Below are positions 3,722 to 54,597 of a DNA stretch of 64,000 nucleotides, piece by piece; positions within the stretch are counted from its first letter, which is position 1, and each line of letters opens with the position of its first letter. This DNA comes from Octopus sinensis (lineage: Eukaryota): contig NC_043004.1 of the NCBI RefSeq assembly GCF_006345805.1, positions 55,800,001 through 55,864,000 of the forward strand. Direction: 5' to 3'. Both the position numbers and the translations under genes were made by a program. The notes beneath the pieces were generated by a model. It worked only from the letters and a program-made list of their open reading frames with translations. It did not search any database and was not told the DNA's origin.

Positions 3722-3806
3722 CAGTAACTGTTTACCATCTTCATTCAGTAATACACTCTCCAATGTCTGCTGGGTGTACACCCCTTCTTCGAGCTCTTCC
3801 AGAAAT
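3722..3806 (-). CDS. WASHC5: Strumpellin coding exon 3 ([29 protein letters not shown])
   Basis: Acceptor ttctcctcag, 85 nt starting in phase 2, donor CTG|GTAAGT; matches human [28 protein letters not shown]. The next exon was not found in 1-3721, so the gene leaves the window. Confidence 0.96.
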
Positions 3807-24702: not shown

Positions 24703-25065
24703 TACTCTTTTACTCTTTTACTTGTTTCAGTCATTTGACTGCGGCCATGCTGGAGCACCACCTTTAATCGAGCAACTCGACTCCGGGACTTATTCTTTGT
24801 AAGCCCAGTACTTATTCTATCGGTCTCTTTTTGCCGAACCACTAAATAACGGGGACAAACACAGACACACAACACACACACACGTATATATATACATATA
24901 TCCAACAGGCTTCTTTCAGTTTCCGTCTACCAAATCCACTCACAAGGCATTGGTCGGCCCGAGGCTATAGCAGAAGACACTTGCCCAAGATGCCACGCAG
25001 TGGGACTGAACCCGGAACCATGTGGTTGGTAAGCAAGCTACTTACCACACAGCCACTCCTGCGCC
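24703..25065 (-). mobile_element. tRNA-derived SINE family A
   Basis: Same consensus as the other copies. Confidence 0.85.
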
Positions 25066-26560: not shown

Positions 26561-27261
26561 CATACTATCAAAAAGTACTAAAAGTTTAATATAAGATAAA
26601 GAGTATATATAGAGATATATATCATTATTTAACATTCGTCTTCCAATGCTGGCATGGGTTGGACAGTTTGTTAGGTGCTTGCCAGGTAGAAGACTACACC
26701 AGGCTACTGTGTTTGTTTCTATATACACAAACACAAACATATATAAACACACAGGCATATGCATCAAAAAACAGTGTATCAAAAAACAGAAAACACCAGC
26801 GACTATACGGCATGAGCCAGCATAAAGCGCATTAGTGGTGCATACTCTAGAGGTTCTAAGACCTTCAGAAGGCTGGTGTGTTGCAGATTAATAAGAATCA
26901 TACCAGCCTCGGAAAAAGCAGACAAAAAAAATCAATGACTGTACACACACACACATCTATACACATACATACACACACATCAATACACATACATACACAC
27001 ACATCAATACACATACATACACACACATCAATACACATACATACACACACATCTATACATATACAAACACACACATATGCAGACATTTTTACACACACAC
27101 AAATGATAAAAAACGATGGCCAATAAGCAAACATTTCTAGTTTTATAAATTTTATCAGTCGATAGACATATTCATCTTAAGTTAGCTATTTTCAAGTGAC
27201 AAGAAACTAATGGTAGTAAAACTTACTTACCATACATGATATATATATATATATATATATA

Positions 27262-28291
27262 TAGTGTAATATATAAAATATATGCATACATACATACATA
27301 TATGTATGTACCTACATCTACATGTATATATACATGTATATATAAATATATATACGTGAGTACAGGACACTACAAATAGACGTAGAACTCAACGAGAAAC
27401 GAAAACGTAAAAACAAACATGGAAAAGGACCTTTTTTTTAACAATGAAAAAACAGAGTACAAGACAAACAACACAAGGAAAAATCCCCTTCATCAGCCGA
27501 CCCTAGTACGACTCCTTGCGTGTTTCGAAGGTGAGGACAGAACACGACTAGTCGACCTAGCCCTTCCTGCGAAAGAATTAAATAAAATTCCTTTGCAGAG
27601 GGGTAAAAACAAGAAAAGAAAAAAATGTGACGTAAAAACGATACAAATAAAATTACAAAATAAAATACAAAATGAAAATACAATTACAAAAAAATACAGT
27701 ACAAGAAATAAAAACAAACAAGAAAACAAACAATGAGGGCCTTTTGGCCTAGACGAGGAAAGATTTTTTAAGAGCGCAGGAAGAAAGCGTGTTCACTGTT
27801 AGGAAGCCGCAAGCGAAAGGAAGTGGTCGCCCGGCTGTGAGAGAGATGAGGAGAGAGTGAGAGAGAGAGGAAGACAAGCGGCTGTGAGAGAGATGAGGAG
27901 GAGTGAGAGAGAGAGAGAGATAGAGGTAGACAAGGAAGGAAGGGAAGGTCAAGCAAAGGGTTATAGAGTTTCGCGTCATAATTATATATAAAAACTTACT
28001 TGGAGGAAACGAAACGACGTGAGGGTGCTCAGTCATACAATAGTATAATATATAAAATATATGCATACATACATATATGTACGTACCTACATCTACATGT
28101 ATATATACATGCATTTATAAATAAATATACGTGAGTACGTCCTGTACTCACGTATATATATTTATATATGCATGTATATATACATGTAGATGTAGGTACG
28201 TACATATATGTATGTATGTATGCATATATTTTATATATTACACTATTGTATGACTGAGCGCCCTCACGTCGTTTCGTTTCCTCCAAGTAAG

Positions 28292-28303
<12 letters not shown>
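27262..28303. repeat. Composite repeat: direct terminal repeat plus 320-bp terminal palindrome
   Basis: Block 27262-27368 recurs at about 28040-28138 and again inverted at 28139-28245; the palindrome spans 27983-28303. Confidence 0.8.
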
Positions 28304-28322
<19 letters not shown>

Positions 28323-38722: not shown

Positions 38723-38829
38723 CTGTTGAAATCAGAAACATATTTGTGAATACAGGAAAATGCCTGGTAGAATCGGGTTACAATTTCGATGTGGTTTTCT
38801 TTGAATTCATCATCCAGATCTTGAAGGTC
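38723..38829 (-). CDS. WASHC5: Strumpellin coding exon 2 ([35 protein letters not shown]+AG)
   Basis: Pyrimidine tract + TAAG acceptor, 107 nt, donor AG|GTTTGT (phase 2); matches human [36 protein letters not shown]. Confidence 0.96.
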
Positions 38830-40607: not shown

Positions 40608-40995
40608 TACTCTTACTCTTTTACTTGTTTCAGTCATTTGACTGTGGCCATGCTGGAGCACCACCTTTAGTCGAGCAAATCGACCCTGGGACTTATTCTT
40701 TGTAAGCCCAGTACTTATTCTATCGGTCTCTTTTGCCAAACCGCTAAGTGACAGGGACGTAAACACACCAGCATCGGTTGTCAAGCAATGCTAGGGGGAC
40801 AAACACAGACACACAAACACACACACACATATATATATACATATATATGACAGGCTTCTTTCAGTTTCCGTCTACCAAATCCACTCACAAGGCATTGGTC
40901 GGCTCGGGGCTATAGCAGAAGACACTTGCCCAAGATGCCACGCAGTGGGACTGAACCCGGAACCATGTGGTTGGTTAGCAAGCTACTTACCACAA
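40608..40995 (-). mobile_element. SINE family A
   Basis: Consensus match. Confidence 0.85.
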
Positions 40996-42915: not shown

Positions 42916-43202
42916 TGTCTGTCCTACTATAATAATTACAACACAAACATACAGATATGTTAGTACACATATCATTCTTTAGGAGTTGACGATCATAAAC
43001 AAGTATACACATGTTATCACATATATTTATTGATAGTTAAATGATGATGATGATGATGAAGTCACATTAAGTAGAACAGAAATACACATCATAGTACACA
43101 TATTTATGGACAGTCAAGTTAAACATCATAGAAACACAAGTTAGCACGTGTATGTATATTAATAGTCAACAGTCATGTTAAACACAAGTATACACATGTT
43201 AG

Positions 43203-43609
43203 TGCGCAGGAGTGGCTGTGTGGTAAGTAGCTTGCTAACCAACCACATGGTTCCGGGTTCTGTCCCACTGCGTGGCATCTTGGGCAAGTGTCTTCTGCTA
43301 TAGCCCCGGGCCGACCAATGCCTTGTGAGTGGATTTGGTAGACGGAAACTGAAAGAAGCCTGTCGTATATATGTATGTATACGTATGCGTATGTGTGTGT
43401 ATGTGTTTGTGTGTCTGTGTTTGTCCCTCTAGCATTGCTTGACAACCGATGCTGGTGTGTTTACGTCCCTGTCACTTAGCGGTTCGGCAAAAGAGACCAA
43501 TAGAATAAGTACTGGGCTTACAAAGAATAAGTCCTGGGGTCGATTTGCTCGACTAAAGGCGGTGCTCCAGCATGGCCGCAGTCAAATGACTGAAACAAGT
43601 AAAAGAGTA
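43203..43609 (+). mobile_element. SINE family A (source of the inverted duplication)
   Basis: Full head-to-tail copy. Confidence 0.88.
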
Positions 43610-43678
43610 GGGTTTCTCAAGGTATCCACTGCAATAAAGTTTGTTTTAACAGAACATCCAAGTTTCAGTGGGGATAAA
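43408..43678 (+). repeat. Inverted duplication, copy 1 (SINE 3' half + 70 bp unique flank)
   Basis: 271/271 identical to the reverse complement of 44944-45214. Confidence 0.95.
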
Positions 43679-43784
43679 TATTACCTCTTGTTTTTATTTT
43701 GCTTCTGTAGCTAATATATAGCTATATTAATAGTCAAAGATCATGTTCAATAGTTTTTATTTCATTCACCACTGTTACCAGCAC

Positions 43785-44025
43785 TACATCTCAATCAAAG
43801 GAGAGGGGCTTTCTCTGTCCAGGTTGCGGATCCATGGAATAAGCTGCCAGATGAGATGGTGAAGATGCCGACAACCGCTCGGTTCAAAGTCTCCCTTGAC
43901 CTCAAGTGGCCTGAACTCTTTACATGAATACCACCCTGTACATAACTCCATGTCCCCCTACATGGCCTTGCTTTTTGCTTTTTGAGCCAAAAAATTAACA
44001 AACTAACTAACTAACTAACTAACAA
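43785..44025 (+). mobile_element. CR1 LINE 3' end fragment
   Basis: AFSVQVADPWNKLPDEMV (CR1 C-terminal FS-R-V--WN-LP motif) followed by a (CTAA)n tail. Confidence 0.8.
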
Positions 44026-44239
44026 ACATATACCACCATCAGCAGAGCCACCACCACTATAATCACCGCTACTGCCAACACTCTACACCCCAACCACGTC
44101 TGTTAAAGCCATAAAGCTAACTTAATCTTTAAATAATTTCTTTTTAATCCGTTCATCACTCAACCTTTTCGAAAGTTTCATTTTTAAATCCCTGCAAGAA
44201 AAAAAAAACAACAACAACATTTATAATGAAACAACTTAC

Positions 44240-44464
44240 AGGTCGGCTGTCAATTTTGCTGTCAAACTGCTCAGTGTTCTTGAAGTAACTGAAGTCACAG
44301 AGGATCTCACCATATTTCGCCTGGTCCTGACGGTTATCTTGGCGGAACACAGGCGGAACATAGTCCGACAGTCGAAGCAGCTCAGCTATAATAGCGTTAC
44401 CTCTTGATGTCAGGTGAATCAGGTTCTGGCCACACTGGTTATTTTCAGCTAGAAATTCTGTCAT
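44240..44464 (-). CDS. WASHC5: WASH complex subunit 5 (strumpellin), first coding exon, aa 1-75
   Basis: Translates [40 protein letters not shown]...SRP, matching the strumpellin N-terminus I recall (human [40 protein letters not shown]). In-frame TAA 6 nt upstream of the ATG; donor CCT|GTAAGT; 225 nt, phase 0. Confidence 0.97.
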
Positions 44465-44522
44465 GTTTTAAGGCTCTGGTATCAATATAACAACCAGGAG
44501 CTGAAAGACTTTCTAAGGGGAG
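44465..44522 (-). other. WASHC5: 5' UTR part of the WASHC5 start-codon exon (58 nt)
   Basis: Long poly-T tract + TTTCCAG acceptor at 44524-44523 implies an upstream non-coding exon, which I could not locate. Confidence 0.7.
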
Positions 44523-44630
44523 CTGGAAAGACAAAAAAAAAAAAAGAACAGAAAAATATATAATAAGAAAGAAAAAAGAAGTAAACAGTCTTAGTCTTCA
44601 AACATAATTTCAATTACATCAACAATGTAC

Positions 44631-44640
44631 AATAATAATA

Positions 44641-44686
<46 letters not shown>

Positions 44687-44706
44687 TAATAATAATAATA
44701 GTAATG

Positions 44707-44748
<42 letters not shown>
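44631..44748. repeat. (AAT)n microsatellite
   Basis: Visible directly; further tracts at 45355-45454, 45881-45902, 57720-57785. Confidence 0.95.
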
Positions 44749-44749
<1 letters not shown>

Positions 44750-45355
44750 GACTAAAACAATACCTGTTGTCATAGGTGCCCTGGGAATGATAGCAAAAGG
44801 GGCTGATAGCTACCTAACTCAGATACCAGGAAACCCAAAAATGGCAGAAGTTCAAAAGATAGTGCTCATGGGAACTGCTCATATCCTACGCAAAATACTC
44901 TCTATGTAATCTCATGGTTTAAAACAAACATAATTTTCGGTTTTTTATCCCCACTGAAACTTGGATGTTCTGTTAAAACAAACTTTATTGCAGTGGATAC
45001 CTTGAGAAACCCTACTCTTTTACTTGTTTCAGTCATTTGACTGCGGCCATGCTGGAGCACCGCCTTTAGTCGAGCAAATCGACCCCAGGACTTATTCTTT
45101 GTAAGCCCAGTACTTATTCTATTGGTCTCTTTTGCCGAACCGCTAAGTGACAGGGACGTAAACACACCAGCATCGGTTGTCAAGCAATGCTAGAGGGACA
45201 AACACAGACACACATTAGTACAACATCCCCACCCCCCAAATATATGGCACACTAGGCATAACAACAACATGAACTTCCAACCCTGTTGTCTCTTGAGGTC
45301 TCTGGGTGAGACTTGGAGCCAACTTGTACAAATATAAAGCAAAAGTCAAACATAG
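44749..45355 (+). mobile_element. 3' end of an RLE-type (R4/Dong-like) non-LTR retrotransposon inserted in (AAT)n
   Basis: TIPVVIGALGMIAKG...QKIVLMGTAHILRKILSM* is a typical R4-clade C-terminus; (AAT)n on both sides; interrupted by 44944-45214. Confidence 0.75.
44944..45214 (-). repeat. Inverted duplication, copy 2, lying inside an R4/Dong-like 3' UTR
   Basis: Exact reverse complement of 43408-43678, including the SINE-flank junction. Confidence 0.95.
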
Positions 45356-45391
45356 AATAATAATATAATAATAATAATAATAATAATAATG

Positions 45392-45446
<55 letters not shown>

Positions 45447-45454
45447 TAATAATA

Positions 45455-45880
45455 GATTTGCTTGTCAGTTGTTTGACCTTAACCAGTTGAGCATGTCCCT
45501 TAGTGGCTGACGATATGTGCATCTCTGATCACGAGCAGAAGTAGTGGGGGAGCATCATAGCCATGTGTTGAGAGGGATTCTTTGGGGTTTGAATAGTTCA
45601 CCTCTGGAAAAATGGGTGGTTCTTTCAACATCCTTAAACAACCCTTATTCAGGGACCGTTTGAGCAGGATGGGCTACTCAACCTGAAGAAAATTCTAACT
45701 GGGCCCCACCTGCAAGGTCATGTGCTGTTTATCTTGATATGAGATCACCATGTCGCGCACATATGGTTGTGATGCATGTGCCTGGTGTACCTTTATCAGA
45801 CGGGTAGTCATGATGGGTATATTGGGCTTCGTATATTTTACCCCAGTGTCACTTTGATGGCATGAACTGCTCTCTCACTC
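45455..45880 (+). mobile_element. Non-coding element embedded in (AAT)n, family unassigned
   Basis: About 425 bp of complex sequence bounded by (AAT)n tracts on both sides. Confidence 0.5.
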
Positions 45881-46682: not shown

Positions 46683-46980
46683 CATTCTCGAGCCATGCCT
46701 GGCTCATAAGGGCCGGTTTCCCGGTTTCTTGGCGTATAGGTTCCCCACCTGGATGGGACGCCGGTCCGTCGCAGGTGAGCTGCAAGATGCAGGAGGAGAG
46801 AAAGAGTGAGAGAAAGTTGTGGCGAAAGTGTTAGCAGAGGTTCGCCATTACCTTCTGCCGGAGCTGCGTTGAGCTTAGGTGTTTCGCTCATAAACACACA
46901 TATCGCCTGGTCTGAGATTTGAATCCGCGATCCCTTGACCGTGAGTCTGCTGCTCTAACCACTAGGCCATGTGCCTCCAC
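46683..46980 (-). mobile_element. SINE family C head and body with an alternative tail
   Basis: Shares head and middle with 30625-30955; different 3' part ending (AAAC)n. Confidence 0.8.
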
Positions 46981-47586: not shown

Positions 47587-48145
47587 TACTCTTTTACTCT
47601 TATACTTGCTTCAGCCATTTGACAGTGGCCATGCTGGAGCACCGCCTTTGGTCAAGCAAATCGATCCCAGGACCTATTCTTTGTAAGCCTAGTACTTATT
47701 CTATCAGTCTCTTTTGCTGAACCACTAAGTTTTGCTGAACTGCTAAGTTACAGGGACATAAACAGGCCACCATCGGTTGTCAAACGATGTTAGGGGGACA
47801 AACACACACACAAACATATACACAAGCATATATATATACACACACATACATATATACCACACCAGCATCGGTTGTCAAGTGATACTGGGGAGACAAACAC
47901 AGACACACAAACGTATACACACACATACATATATATAATATATATATATATAATATATATATATATACATACATATATATATACAACGGGCTTCTTTCAA
48001 TTTCCGTCTACCAAATCTACTCACAAGGCTTTGGTCGGGCCGAGGCTATAGTAGAAGACACTTGCCCAAGGTGCCACACAGTGGGACTGAACCCGGAACC
48101 ATGTGGTTTGTAAGCTAGCTCCTTACCACACAGCCACTCCTATGC
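47587..48145 (-). mobile_element. SINE family A with internal tandem duplications
   Basis: Repeated ttttgctgaac and catcggttgtcaa blocks. Confidence 0.8.
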
Positions 48146-54166: not shown

Positions 54167-54597
54167 CTTTACTCCTTTACTCGTTTGAGTCATTTGACTG
54201 TGGCCATGCTGGAGCACCACCTTTAGTCGAGCAAATCGACCCCAGGACTTATTCTTTGTAAGCCTAGTACTTATTCTATCAGTCTCTTTGCCGAACCACT
54301 AAGTTATGGGGACGTAAACACACCAGCATCGGTTGTCAAGTGATATTGGGAGGACAAACACAGACACACAAACGTATACACACAGACATACACATATACA
54401 TATATATATATTATATATATATATATGCACATATATACAACGGGCTTCTTTCAGTTTCTATTTACCAAATCCACTCACAAGGCTTTTTGGTCTACTCAAG
54501 GCTGTAGTAGAAGACACTTGCTGAAGGTACCACGCAGTGTGACTGAACCCAGAACCACGTGGTTCGTAAGCAAGCTACTTACCACACAGCCACTCCT
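54167..54597 (-). mobile_element. SINE family A
   Basis: Consensus match. Confidence 0.85.

Follow-up and report, generated by a model that had tools for sequence, protein, structure and literature searches.

The sequence analysed here, a stretch of 64 kb from Octopus sinensis that we call the window, contains the start-codon exon of WASHC5 (strumpellin) between two identical sequences in inverted orientation. How did such an arrangement arise, and could it affect the gene? A repeat finder delimited two arms of 271 nt each, a left arm at 43408-43678 on the plus strand and a right arm at 44944-45214 on the minus strand, with 100% complementarity and 1265 nt between them. Their exact reverse-complementarity was verified again by a scripted string comparison. 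Besides microsatellites, this arm pair is the sole long perfect repeat in the 64-kb window. The left arm is separated from the exon by 561 nt (43679-44239) and the right arm by 421 nt (44523-44943). The original prediction, made from the sequence, had described a fully reverse-complementary pair at distances of about 560 and about 420 nt from an exon of 283 nt. Both comparisons and the recomputed values (561, 421 and 283 nt) agree with that description. If the arrangement is real, a perfect 271-bp inverted repeat surrounds the start exon of an essential endosomal-trafficking gene.

The exon occupies 44240-44522 on the minus strand and comprises a 58-nt leader followed by 75 codons, from the ATG (44464-44462) down to 44240. 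Its original assignment as the WASHC5 start-codon exon is borne out by protein comparisons. The spliced exons 1-3 (139 aa) match Pfam PF10266 with an E-value of 5.8e-48 over profile positions 1-114, all 142 database matches of the 75-aa exon peptide carry PF10266, and residues 1-75 of human WASHC5 map to 44464-44240 by tblastn. The next coding exon, at 38723-38829 on the minus strand (107 nt), places WASHC5 on the minus strand and the left arm within a 5.4-kb intron. A third coding exon in the window lies at 3722-3806 on the same strand (85 nt). On the minus strand, a GTAAGT donor follows the start exon immediately at 44239-44234. Directly upstream of the exon, an acceptor-like polypyrimidine tract, T13-GTCTTTCCAG, spans 44523-44560 on the minus strand, and a TATA-like TTATATAT is found at 44563-44556. 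In locus L001 of a distant cephalopod, a comparable (T)n-CTCTTTTCCAG precedes the ATG by 29 nt, with no clear counterpart in two other molluscs (L002 and L003). This acceptor-like motif (44523-44545) is the only support for the start exon being internal. For the right arm to be intronic, transcription would have to start upstream of 45214. Upstream of the start exon we found neither a promoter nor a further exon, no CpG island and no adjacent gene, and the upstream ORFs gave no Pfam matches. The single CpG-rich spot upstream, at 46700-46980, was rejected as a CpG island because it is another SINE family.

Each arm combines two kinds of sequence. Arm positions 1-202 derive from the 3' portion of a highly abundant SINE of about 400 nt and match about 20 other SINE copies with 72-96.5% identity in a BLAST search of the arm against the 64-kb window. 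In the same search, arm positions 203-271 (43610-43678 and 44944-45012) match the two arms only. A 68-nt probe from this flank returned two matches at three or fewer mismatches against none expected from 100 shuffles, which is far beyond chance. Two independent SINE insertions were rejected as an explanation, because the identity does not stop at the SINE tail but continues for 69 nt, through sequence that the window contains nowhere else than in the arms. BLAST and MAFFT comparison with 13 other copies in the window identified a full-length SINE of about 400 nt at 43206-43609 on the plus strand, the 3' 202 nt of which (43408-43609) are the SINE part of the left arm, followed by the unique flank (43610-43678). 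This SINE aligns unbroken across 43407/43408, and the family tail, ...AAGTAAAAGAGTA, ends at 43609. The right arm is the reverse-complement copy, with the unique flank at 44944-45012 and the SINE 3' part at 45013-45214, and carries the private changes of the left SINE (gtccctct, cctgtcac and gaccaatag), which are absent from the other family members in the MAFFT alignment. The common 69-nt non-SINE flank, the private variants, and an identity of 100% versus at most 96.5% all confirm that the pair is a duplication rather than two SINE insertions, as had been proposed. Rfam at gathering thresholds (41-48 kb) and ARAGORN (43-47.2 kb) gave no match and thus no support for a tRNA origin of the SINE.

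The copy is young. The arms have no differences in 271 nt, the divergence of every other SINE pair is 3.5% or more, and the left SINE itself is about 2% off its family consensus. The boundaries of the copy, which is inverted and lies 1265 bp away, are unrelated to the ends of the element: one falls within the microsatellite of the SINE, the other 69 nt beyond the point where the SINE ends. The right arm ends inside the (TG)n microsatellite of the SINE, and the left arm runs on into the intact full-length SINE. Local alignment of the sequences outside all four ends scored under the shuffle mean, revealing no homology beyond the arms, so the boundaries of the event are sharp and not those of a transposable element. 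Eroded homology past the arms, as expected of an older duplication kept identical by conversion, is absent in this flank alignment. The private variants together with the sharp ends indicate one very recent local inverted copy, derived from one specific SINE copy. The sequence makes the SINE at 43206-43609 the likely source copy. No recognisable target-site duplication (TSD) was found at the ends of either SINE copy, which we counted against a proven direction of copying; other family members have TSDs of about 17 nt, for example the copy at 24711-25064.

On balance, and with modest confidence, we favour a very recent local inverted duplication at the DNA level, namely a templated inverted insertion that is most likely neutral. 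A source segment of 271 bp from WASHC5 intron 1, consisting of the last 202 nt of the resident SINE and the following 69 nt of unique DNA, would have been copied in reverse into the tail of a LINE fragment, at a distance of 1,265 bp and some 420 bp upstream from the start exon. A template switch onto a nearby template during replication or repair would be the most likely mechanism. Such a switch might have occurred as an MMBIR/FoSTeS-type or break-repair "templated insertion", or through one-ended repair primed on an inverted SINE and running on into the flank of its neighbour. Microhomology is confined to 2 nt (TT) at one junction, where 44944-45 equals 45215-16 and leaves the placement of the right arm ambiguous by these 2 nt, with none at the other junction, too little to diagnose the mechanism. 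Two reports on template switching describe an inverted copy of nearby sequence as typical of the process (PMC7954356, PMC11724301). The WASHC5 copy resembles the short-range templated inverted insertions presented there in being a nearby inverted copy with sharp ends unrelated to transposable elements and little or no junction homology, but at 271 bp it is longer than the events of tens of bp described there. Clinical inverted duplications extend from kb to Mb, whereas the WASHC5 copy is much shorter. If real, the WASHC5 copy is a clean and datable instance, from the genome of a cephalopod, of a small templated inverted duplication.

The right arm appears, from the sequence around it, to sit in the 3' UTR of a LINE. 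A (TAA)n microsatellite at 44628-44750 lies between the exon and the LINE fragment, followed by 44757-44908 on the plus strand, which we take from its motif (PVVIGALGMIAKGADSYLTQIPGNPKMAEVQKIVLMGTAHILRKILSM and a stop) to be the C-terminal end of a LINE ORF. This putative ORF end has no Pfam match, and the right arm begins 35 nt past its stop. A second (TAA)n microsatellite at 45360-45455 might be the tail of the LINE fragment. A search with the reconstructed empty site, 44751-44943 joined to 45215-45365, found no second copy of the LINE tail in the window. On the other side of the exon, the 561-nt stretch of intron 1 on the minus strand between the left arm and the exon (43679-44239) has no other copy in the window and contains a C-terminal fragment of a LINE ORF2 at about 43800-43925 on the plus strand.

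Mobile-element activity could in principle have produced a copy with such a composition. If the copy arose by retrotransposition with 3' transduction, transcription of the left SINE would have read through into 69 nt of flank, and the transcript would have been reverse-transcribed, truncated at its 5' end and inserted nearby. LINE or SINE 3' transduction would be expected to leave a 5'-truncated element joined to sequence from downstream of its source, which is exactly what the right arm consists of, the flank contains an AATAAA at 43633-43638, and three extra A residues follow the copy (GGGGAT-AAAAAA versus GGGGAT-AAA-T in the source). However, the insertion lacks a TSD at 44943/45215, whereas family members have TSDs, and it has neither the (AAAGAGTA)n tail of the family nor a real poly(A) tail. 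A chance landing 1.3 kb from the source in a Gb-sized genome would also be very unlikely. These differences from known transduction events make this origin highly improbable. A foldback or long-TIR DNA transposon, mobile and ending in inverted repeats of 271 bp, would explain why perfect terminal inverted repeats bound a unit of 1807 bp (43408-45214). Its interior would then be a conserved, correctly oriented host exon with intron sequence, and its "TIRs" are a SINE fragment and flank, with no TSD beyond the TT dinucleotide and no second copy in the window. We regard the probability of such an element as negligible; the host-exon interior, the missing TSD and the single copy in the window effectively refute it.

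Identical inverted copies bracketing a short segment are also a feature of staggered-break inversion, a model reportedly put forward by Ranz et al. 2007 for inverted duplications at inversion breakpoints. The staggered-break model inverts the bracketed segment, but the WASHC5 exon is oriented like the remainder of the gene. The segment has therefore never been inverted, or has been inverted twice, and we rejected this model.

Might the right arm, or the whole arrangement, be absent from the genome and present in the assembly as an artefact? The right arm could have entered during contig building or gap filling, through a long read that was chimeric or folded back, and polishing with reads of the true left copy could have made it base-perfect. 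The identity of exactly 100% over 271 nt, in a sequence where all other SINE pairs diverge, would be the outcome of gap filling or polishing as well as of a recent copy. One breakpoint falls in the (TG)n microsatellite, and the insert lies between two (TAA)n arrays, all of which is difficult sequence. Chimeric or palindromic long reads and the misassemblies that result from them are documented (PMC6218980, PMC7500977). Despite about 20 SINEs and long microsatellites, the 64 kb contain no N gaps, and within this uninterrupted sequence the insert is bordered by unique DNA on either side. The lack of gaps suggests assembly from long reads, and an insert of 271 bp in its interior would have to be backed by reads. 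Typical fold-back chimeras are palindromes without a unique spacer of 1.3 kb, and no other perfect duplicate was found in the window.

Look-ups of independent sequence gave nothing to confirm the junctions. Exact-product look-ups gave no record for the exon ORF or for the ORFs that span the inner junctions of the two arms, and a metagenome scan with a 24-mer of the unique flank gave no matches. Two protein searches returned no relative at the level of Octopus, with fragments of at most 81% identity only. The best retrievable locus, the distant cephalopod L001, aligns in the exons only, with 72-79% nucleotide identity, and does not have the SINE. We consider an artefact somewhat unlikely, and we infer that the sequence is present in the animal. 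If it were an artefact, the 5' end of WASHC5 would contain a local misassembly that misleads editing and circRNA callers.

A templated inverted insertion at this position could have consequences for the RNA. It is established that flanking inverted repeats promote exon circularisation, as reported by Jeck 2013, Zhang 2014, Liang and Wilusz 2014 and Ivanov 2015. The two arms might pair in the WASHC5 pre-mRNA and loop out the ATG exon, giving rise to appreciable amounts of a 283-nt circRNA, possibly with a 100-aa peptide, to skipping of the exon, or to both. In the MFE structure of the pre-mRNA strand, the arms pair over 271 of 271 bases with a duplex energy of -543 kcal/mol, if both are on one transcript. 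Strong acceptor-like and donor motifs on the exon, with a similar acceptor motif upstream of the ATG in the distant cephalopod, fit this possibility, and so does the proximity of the arms to the exon (421 and 561 nt); the arms would also be transcribed ahead of any competitor. At the hypothetical back-splice junction, 44240 joined to 44522, the sequence would read ...GACAGCCGACCT followed directly by CTCCCCTTAGAAAG.... The circular ORF of 100 aa that had been predicted, with 75 aa of strumpellin and 25 further residues, was reproduced in our arithmetic.

Nevertheless, if the start exon is the first exon, back-splicing is impossible and the right arm is promoter-proximal DNA. By human standards, a circRNA made of one exon of 283 nt would be short. 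Longer SINE duplexes also compete with the arm pair, one inside the intron of the left arm and others spanning the exon. The inverted SINE at 40614-40994 on the minus strand, which shares this intron with the left arm, has 94.6% identity over 391 nt and is a competing pairing partner: its predicted duplex with the full left SINE reaches -736 kcal/mol with 372 bp paired. Upstream of the exon, two adjoining inverted SINE copies at 47595-48141 on the minus strand form an older pair with the left SINE across the exon. The predicted duplexes of the full left SINE with upstream inverted copies have -631 kcal/mol (47595-48141; 374 bp paired) and -637 kcal/mol. In this comparison, the arm pair, with -543 kcal/mol and 270 bp, is out-competed by the same-intron SINE pair, yet it is transcribed first. 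Ordinary inverted SINEs are thus predicted to pair across the exon, which was already bracketed before the duplication.

The abundance of circRNAs in octopus also bears on this question. CircRNAs are "expressed at overall low levels" in Octopus vulgaris, which has been linked to repression by ADAR (Zolotarov et al. 2022, PMC9699675). The original prediction had pointed to the heavy editing of coleoid cephalopods; heavy ADAR activity argues against a circRNA rather than for it (PMC9699675). In octopus, as in animals at large, young inverted repeats are the principal substrates of ADAR (PMC9989829). If the transcription start site lies upstream of 45214, a perfect 271-bp intronic dsRNA would form, for which hyper-editing by ADAR would be expected, and back-splicing or skipping of the ATG exon would be favoured modestly at most. 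The arrangement resembles the mammalian IRAlu or reverse-complementary-match pairs in that inverted sequences derived from SINEs flank an internal-looking exon, with a predicted long intramolecular dsRNA joining the splice sites as a substrate for ADAR (PMC9989829). It differs from them in being one locally duplicated segment that includes non-SINE DNA and is perfectly identical, in being known from sequence alone, and in that the WASHC5 exon was already flanked by ordinary inverted SINE pairs. Back-splicing, exon skipping and editing at this locus are hypothetical, and an appreciable circRNA or exon skipping seems quite unlikely. The effect of an extra close and perfect repeat is expected to be small, and the duplication is most likely functionally neutral.

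That the duplication is a real, perhaps polymorphic variant altering WASHC5 output, either via the ATG-containing circRNA or start-exon skipping or via arm-mediated flipping of the 1.27-kb segment, is very unlikely. If circularisation or skipping did occur, the locus would offer a natural allele-specific test of circularisation driven by inverted repeats in a heavily editing animal. With flipping, recombination between the 271-bp arms would turn the start-exon segment and switch the gene off on that chromosome. Carriers and non-carriers would constitute a natural experiment on editing, back-splicing and exon use amid saturating inverted SINEs. Elsewhere in the gene, intron 2 contains a second local inverted duplicate of 108 nt with 98% identity, which shows that the process or the structure recurs.

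Over 42-46.5 kb, the repeat finder returned a single outstanding inverted pair, 43408-43678 (left arm) and 44944-45214 (right arm), with 271 nt per arm, 100% complementarity and a 1265-nt spacer. Direct string comparison reproduced the exact reverse-complementarity, confirming the perfect 271-bp arms of the original prediction. The window has no N characters, and a self-comparison of its whole length at ≥97% identity found no other long perfect repeats: nearly all of the remaining matches were palindromic microsatellites of the (TA)n or (TAA)n type, and the sole other real repeat was an inverted 108-nt pair (98%) in a different intron.

The exon between the arms had been read as the start-codon exon of WASHC5, an assignment upheld by Pfam and tblastn. 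Minus-strand 44464-44240 translates to 75 aa, and PF10266 (Strumpellin) is carried by 142 of the 142 database relatives of this peptide. In tblastn, residues 1-75 of human WASHC5 map to the exon, and the following segments hit this strand again at ~38.8 kb and ~3.7 kb. Three minus-strand exons were set from the sequence (44522-44240, 38829-38723 and 3806-3722), and their 139-aa spliced product matches PF10266 from profile position 1 (E 5.8e-48). The first has the donor CCT/GTAAGT, and T13-GTCTTTCCAG immediately 5' of 44522 is a near-ideal acceptor motif. Its length (283 nt), its distances from the right, upstream arm (421 nt) and the left, downstream arm (561 nt), and its hypothetical 100-aa circular ORF were recomputed and agree with the predicted values. 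These comparisons support an inverted duplication that has the WASHC5 ATG exon between its copies.

A BLAST search of the window with the arm as query assigned arm positions 1-202 to a very abundant interspersed repeat of ~400 nt, a SINE family with ~20 copies in 64 kb on either strand, 72-96.5% identical to the SINE part of the arm; this comes to roughly one copy every 3 kb. When the copies were aligned together with their flanks, the 3' terminus of the family fell at ...AAGTAAAAGAGTA, often followed by further AAAGAGTA units, which is position 43609 in the left copy. The other 69 nt (43610-43678 and 44944-45012) are present in the window at the two arms only, and a probe allowing up to 3 mismatches gave two matches against none expected in shuffles, as the predicted unique flank in both arms requires. 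Substitutions private to the left copy (gtccCTct, ccTgtcac, gaccAatag) and absent from the other family members in the alignment recur in the right arm. The left arm runs uninterrupted into an intact full-length SINE (43206-43609), and the right arm ends at 45214 within the internal (TG)n tract of the SINE, with unrelated DNA beyond. The boundaries are sharp, since local alignments of the 300 nt outside each of the four arm ends scored lower than shuffled controls did on average. Together, these features support the view that the arms are a single duplication rather than two SINE insertions. The head of the family consensus has a B-box-like GGTTCAGTCC; a tRNA origin, as in octopus SINEs, is putative for this family, and neither ARAGORN nor Rfam at gathering thresholds made a tRNA or RNA-family call.

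From the exon to the right arm, the sequence passes through an A-rich stretch, then a (TAA)n array (44628-44750) and then the C-terminal end of a putative LINE ORF (44757-44908). The arm begins 35 nt past the stop of this fragment and a second (TAA)n array lies beyond it (45360-45455), so that it has the appearance of an insert within the 3' tail of a LINE; a search of the window for another copy of this tail, to serve as the empty site, found none. Junction homology is limited to a TT dinucleotide (44944-45 = 45215-16). A templated inverted insertion would account for this structure: a template switch, either in replication or in the repair of a break, would have copied a sequence 1.3 kb away and inserted it inverted. 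In keeping with this, the copy is inverted and nearby, its boundaries are unrelated to element ends and its junctions have almost no homology; the copying may have run in either direction. Events of this kind are described in PMC7954356 and PMC11724301, and the WASHC5 copy resembles those in its nearby inverted source and non-element boundaries. Alternatively, a break beside the left SINE could have been repaired by priming on the inverted right SINE, with a 69-nt run into its flank. Retrotransposition with 3' transduction would match the content of the right arm, but it is a weaker explanation, as the arm has neither a target-site duplication (TSD) around it nor a tail, and the new copy would have had to land by chance 1.3 kb from its source. 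An inversion between staggered breaks would have inverted the exon, yet the exon keeps the orientation of the gene, and the host exon inside excludes a long-TIR transposon.

The left SINE differs from the family consensus at ~2% of positions by hand count on the multiple alignment, mostly CpG transitions, and there are no differences between the arms in 271 positions. The duplication might thus be much younger than the SINE insertion, be kept identical by conversion, or be an assembly artefact. An artefact is possible, given the exactly 100% arm identity, the breakpoints within or close to microsatellites, and chimeric long reads, a source of misassembly documented in PMC6218980 and PMC7500977. 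Nevertheless, the insert, flanked on both sides by unique DNA, sits within 64 kb of sequence that has no gaps, its arms are separated by a spacer, unlike the spacer-less palindromes of fold-back chimeras, and a second local inverted duplicate in intron 2 (27261-27368 versus 28139-28246, 98%) adjoins an 86% palindrome. We consider it rather likely that the sequence exists in the animal. It would add one more example to two known classes, templated inverted microduplications and inverted-repeat pairs around exons, and is most likely neutral; it might serve chiefly as a natural allele on which to test inverted-repeat effects, or else to flag a local misassembly.

Any effect on RNA depends on whether the exon is internal, because a first exon could not be back-spliced and the right arm would not be co-transcribed with the gene. 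Upstream of the exon to 64 kb, the search for a WASHC5 promoter or 5' exon found only repeats, and ten of the more protein-like upstream ORFs gave no Pfam match. The lone CpG-rich spot upstream (46700-46980, minus strand) is a second SINE-like family; it has a tRNA-like head (ggaggcacatggcctagtggttagagc...ggattcaaatctc), and ARAGORN made no tRNA call there. L001, a distant cephalopod-like locus with 81% aa identity in the exon and alignable in exons only, has AAATTTTTTTCTCTTTTCCAG 29 nt 5' of its ATG; this and the strength of the acceptor motif at 44522 count for an internal exon. In two further, more distant mollusc-like loci the acceptor upstream of the ATG is ambiguous. Against it counts a TATA-like TTATATAT ~35-40 nt 5' of 44522, a kind of motif common in AT-rich DNA. 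On balance, we somewhat favour an internal exon with both arms co-transcribed.

In the predicted fold of 2,020 nt of the pre-mRNA strand, all 271 right-arm bases pair with their left-arm partners, and the minimum free energy is -888 kcal/mol versus -485 kcal/mol with base-pair span limited to 600 nt. The arm pair (270 bp, -543 kcal/mol, across the exon) is not the strongest duplex among those computed: the left full SINE is predicted to pair with the inverted copy 40614-40994 in the same intron (372 bp, -736 kcal/mol) and, across the exon, with the copies at 47595-48141 (374 bp, -631 kcal/mol) and 54170-54597 (369 bp, -637 kcal/mol). Inverted SINEs bracketed the exon already, with a within-intron competitor at 40614-40994, and the contribution of the duplication is proximity, perfection and earliest transcription. 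With ~20 copies in both orientations, inverted SINE pairs flank every WASHC5 exon in the window, and duplexes of >330 bp are possible. Across animals, Octopus bimaculoides among them, ADAR finds its main substrates in young inverted repeats (PMC9989829). In Octopus vulgaris, Zolotarov et al. 2022 reported low overall circRNA levels and connected these with repression by ADAR (PMC9699675). This literature and the competing SINE duplexes point the same way: if there is an RNA outcome at all, the expectation is hyper-edited arms, not circRNA in abundance. The hypothetical functional reading of the duplication (circRNA, skipping, editing) is somewhat weakened.

Several minor features accompany the duplication. 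The left SINE has no recognisable TSD at either end, and its 3' side may itself have been remodelled; the copy at 24711-25064 has a TSD of ~17 nt. A 28-nt direct repeat, 43155-43182 and 43723-43750 (86% identical, TATATTAATAGTCAA..ATCATGTT.AA, 568 nt start to start), encloses the left SINE and 113 nt of its 3' flank. Its divergence and its distance from the SINE ends are too great for a TSD, and it may be what is left of an older duplication, or a coincidence. The LINE fragment and its presumed 3' tail, bordered by (TAA)n arrays on either side, are reminiscent of LINE families with the Dong/R4-like habit of targeting TAA repeats or ending in them; the 53-aa peptide gave no Pfam match. The part of intron 1 that separates the left arm from the exon contains a further LINE ORF2 C-terminal remnant (..WNKLPDEMVKMPTTARFKVSLD..) at 43800-43925 (+). 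The 108-nt arms in intron 2 are 770 nt apart, and 28139-28246 sits within a near-palindrome (27978-28129 and 28157-28308, 152 nt, 86%, 27-nt spacer) with a direct copy (88%) at 28048-28138. Candidate explanations of this structure are a TE with inverted termini and a second template-switch product; the DNA inside it (~27380-27980) is CpG-rich, with an o/e of ~1.1.
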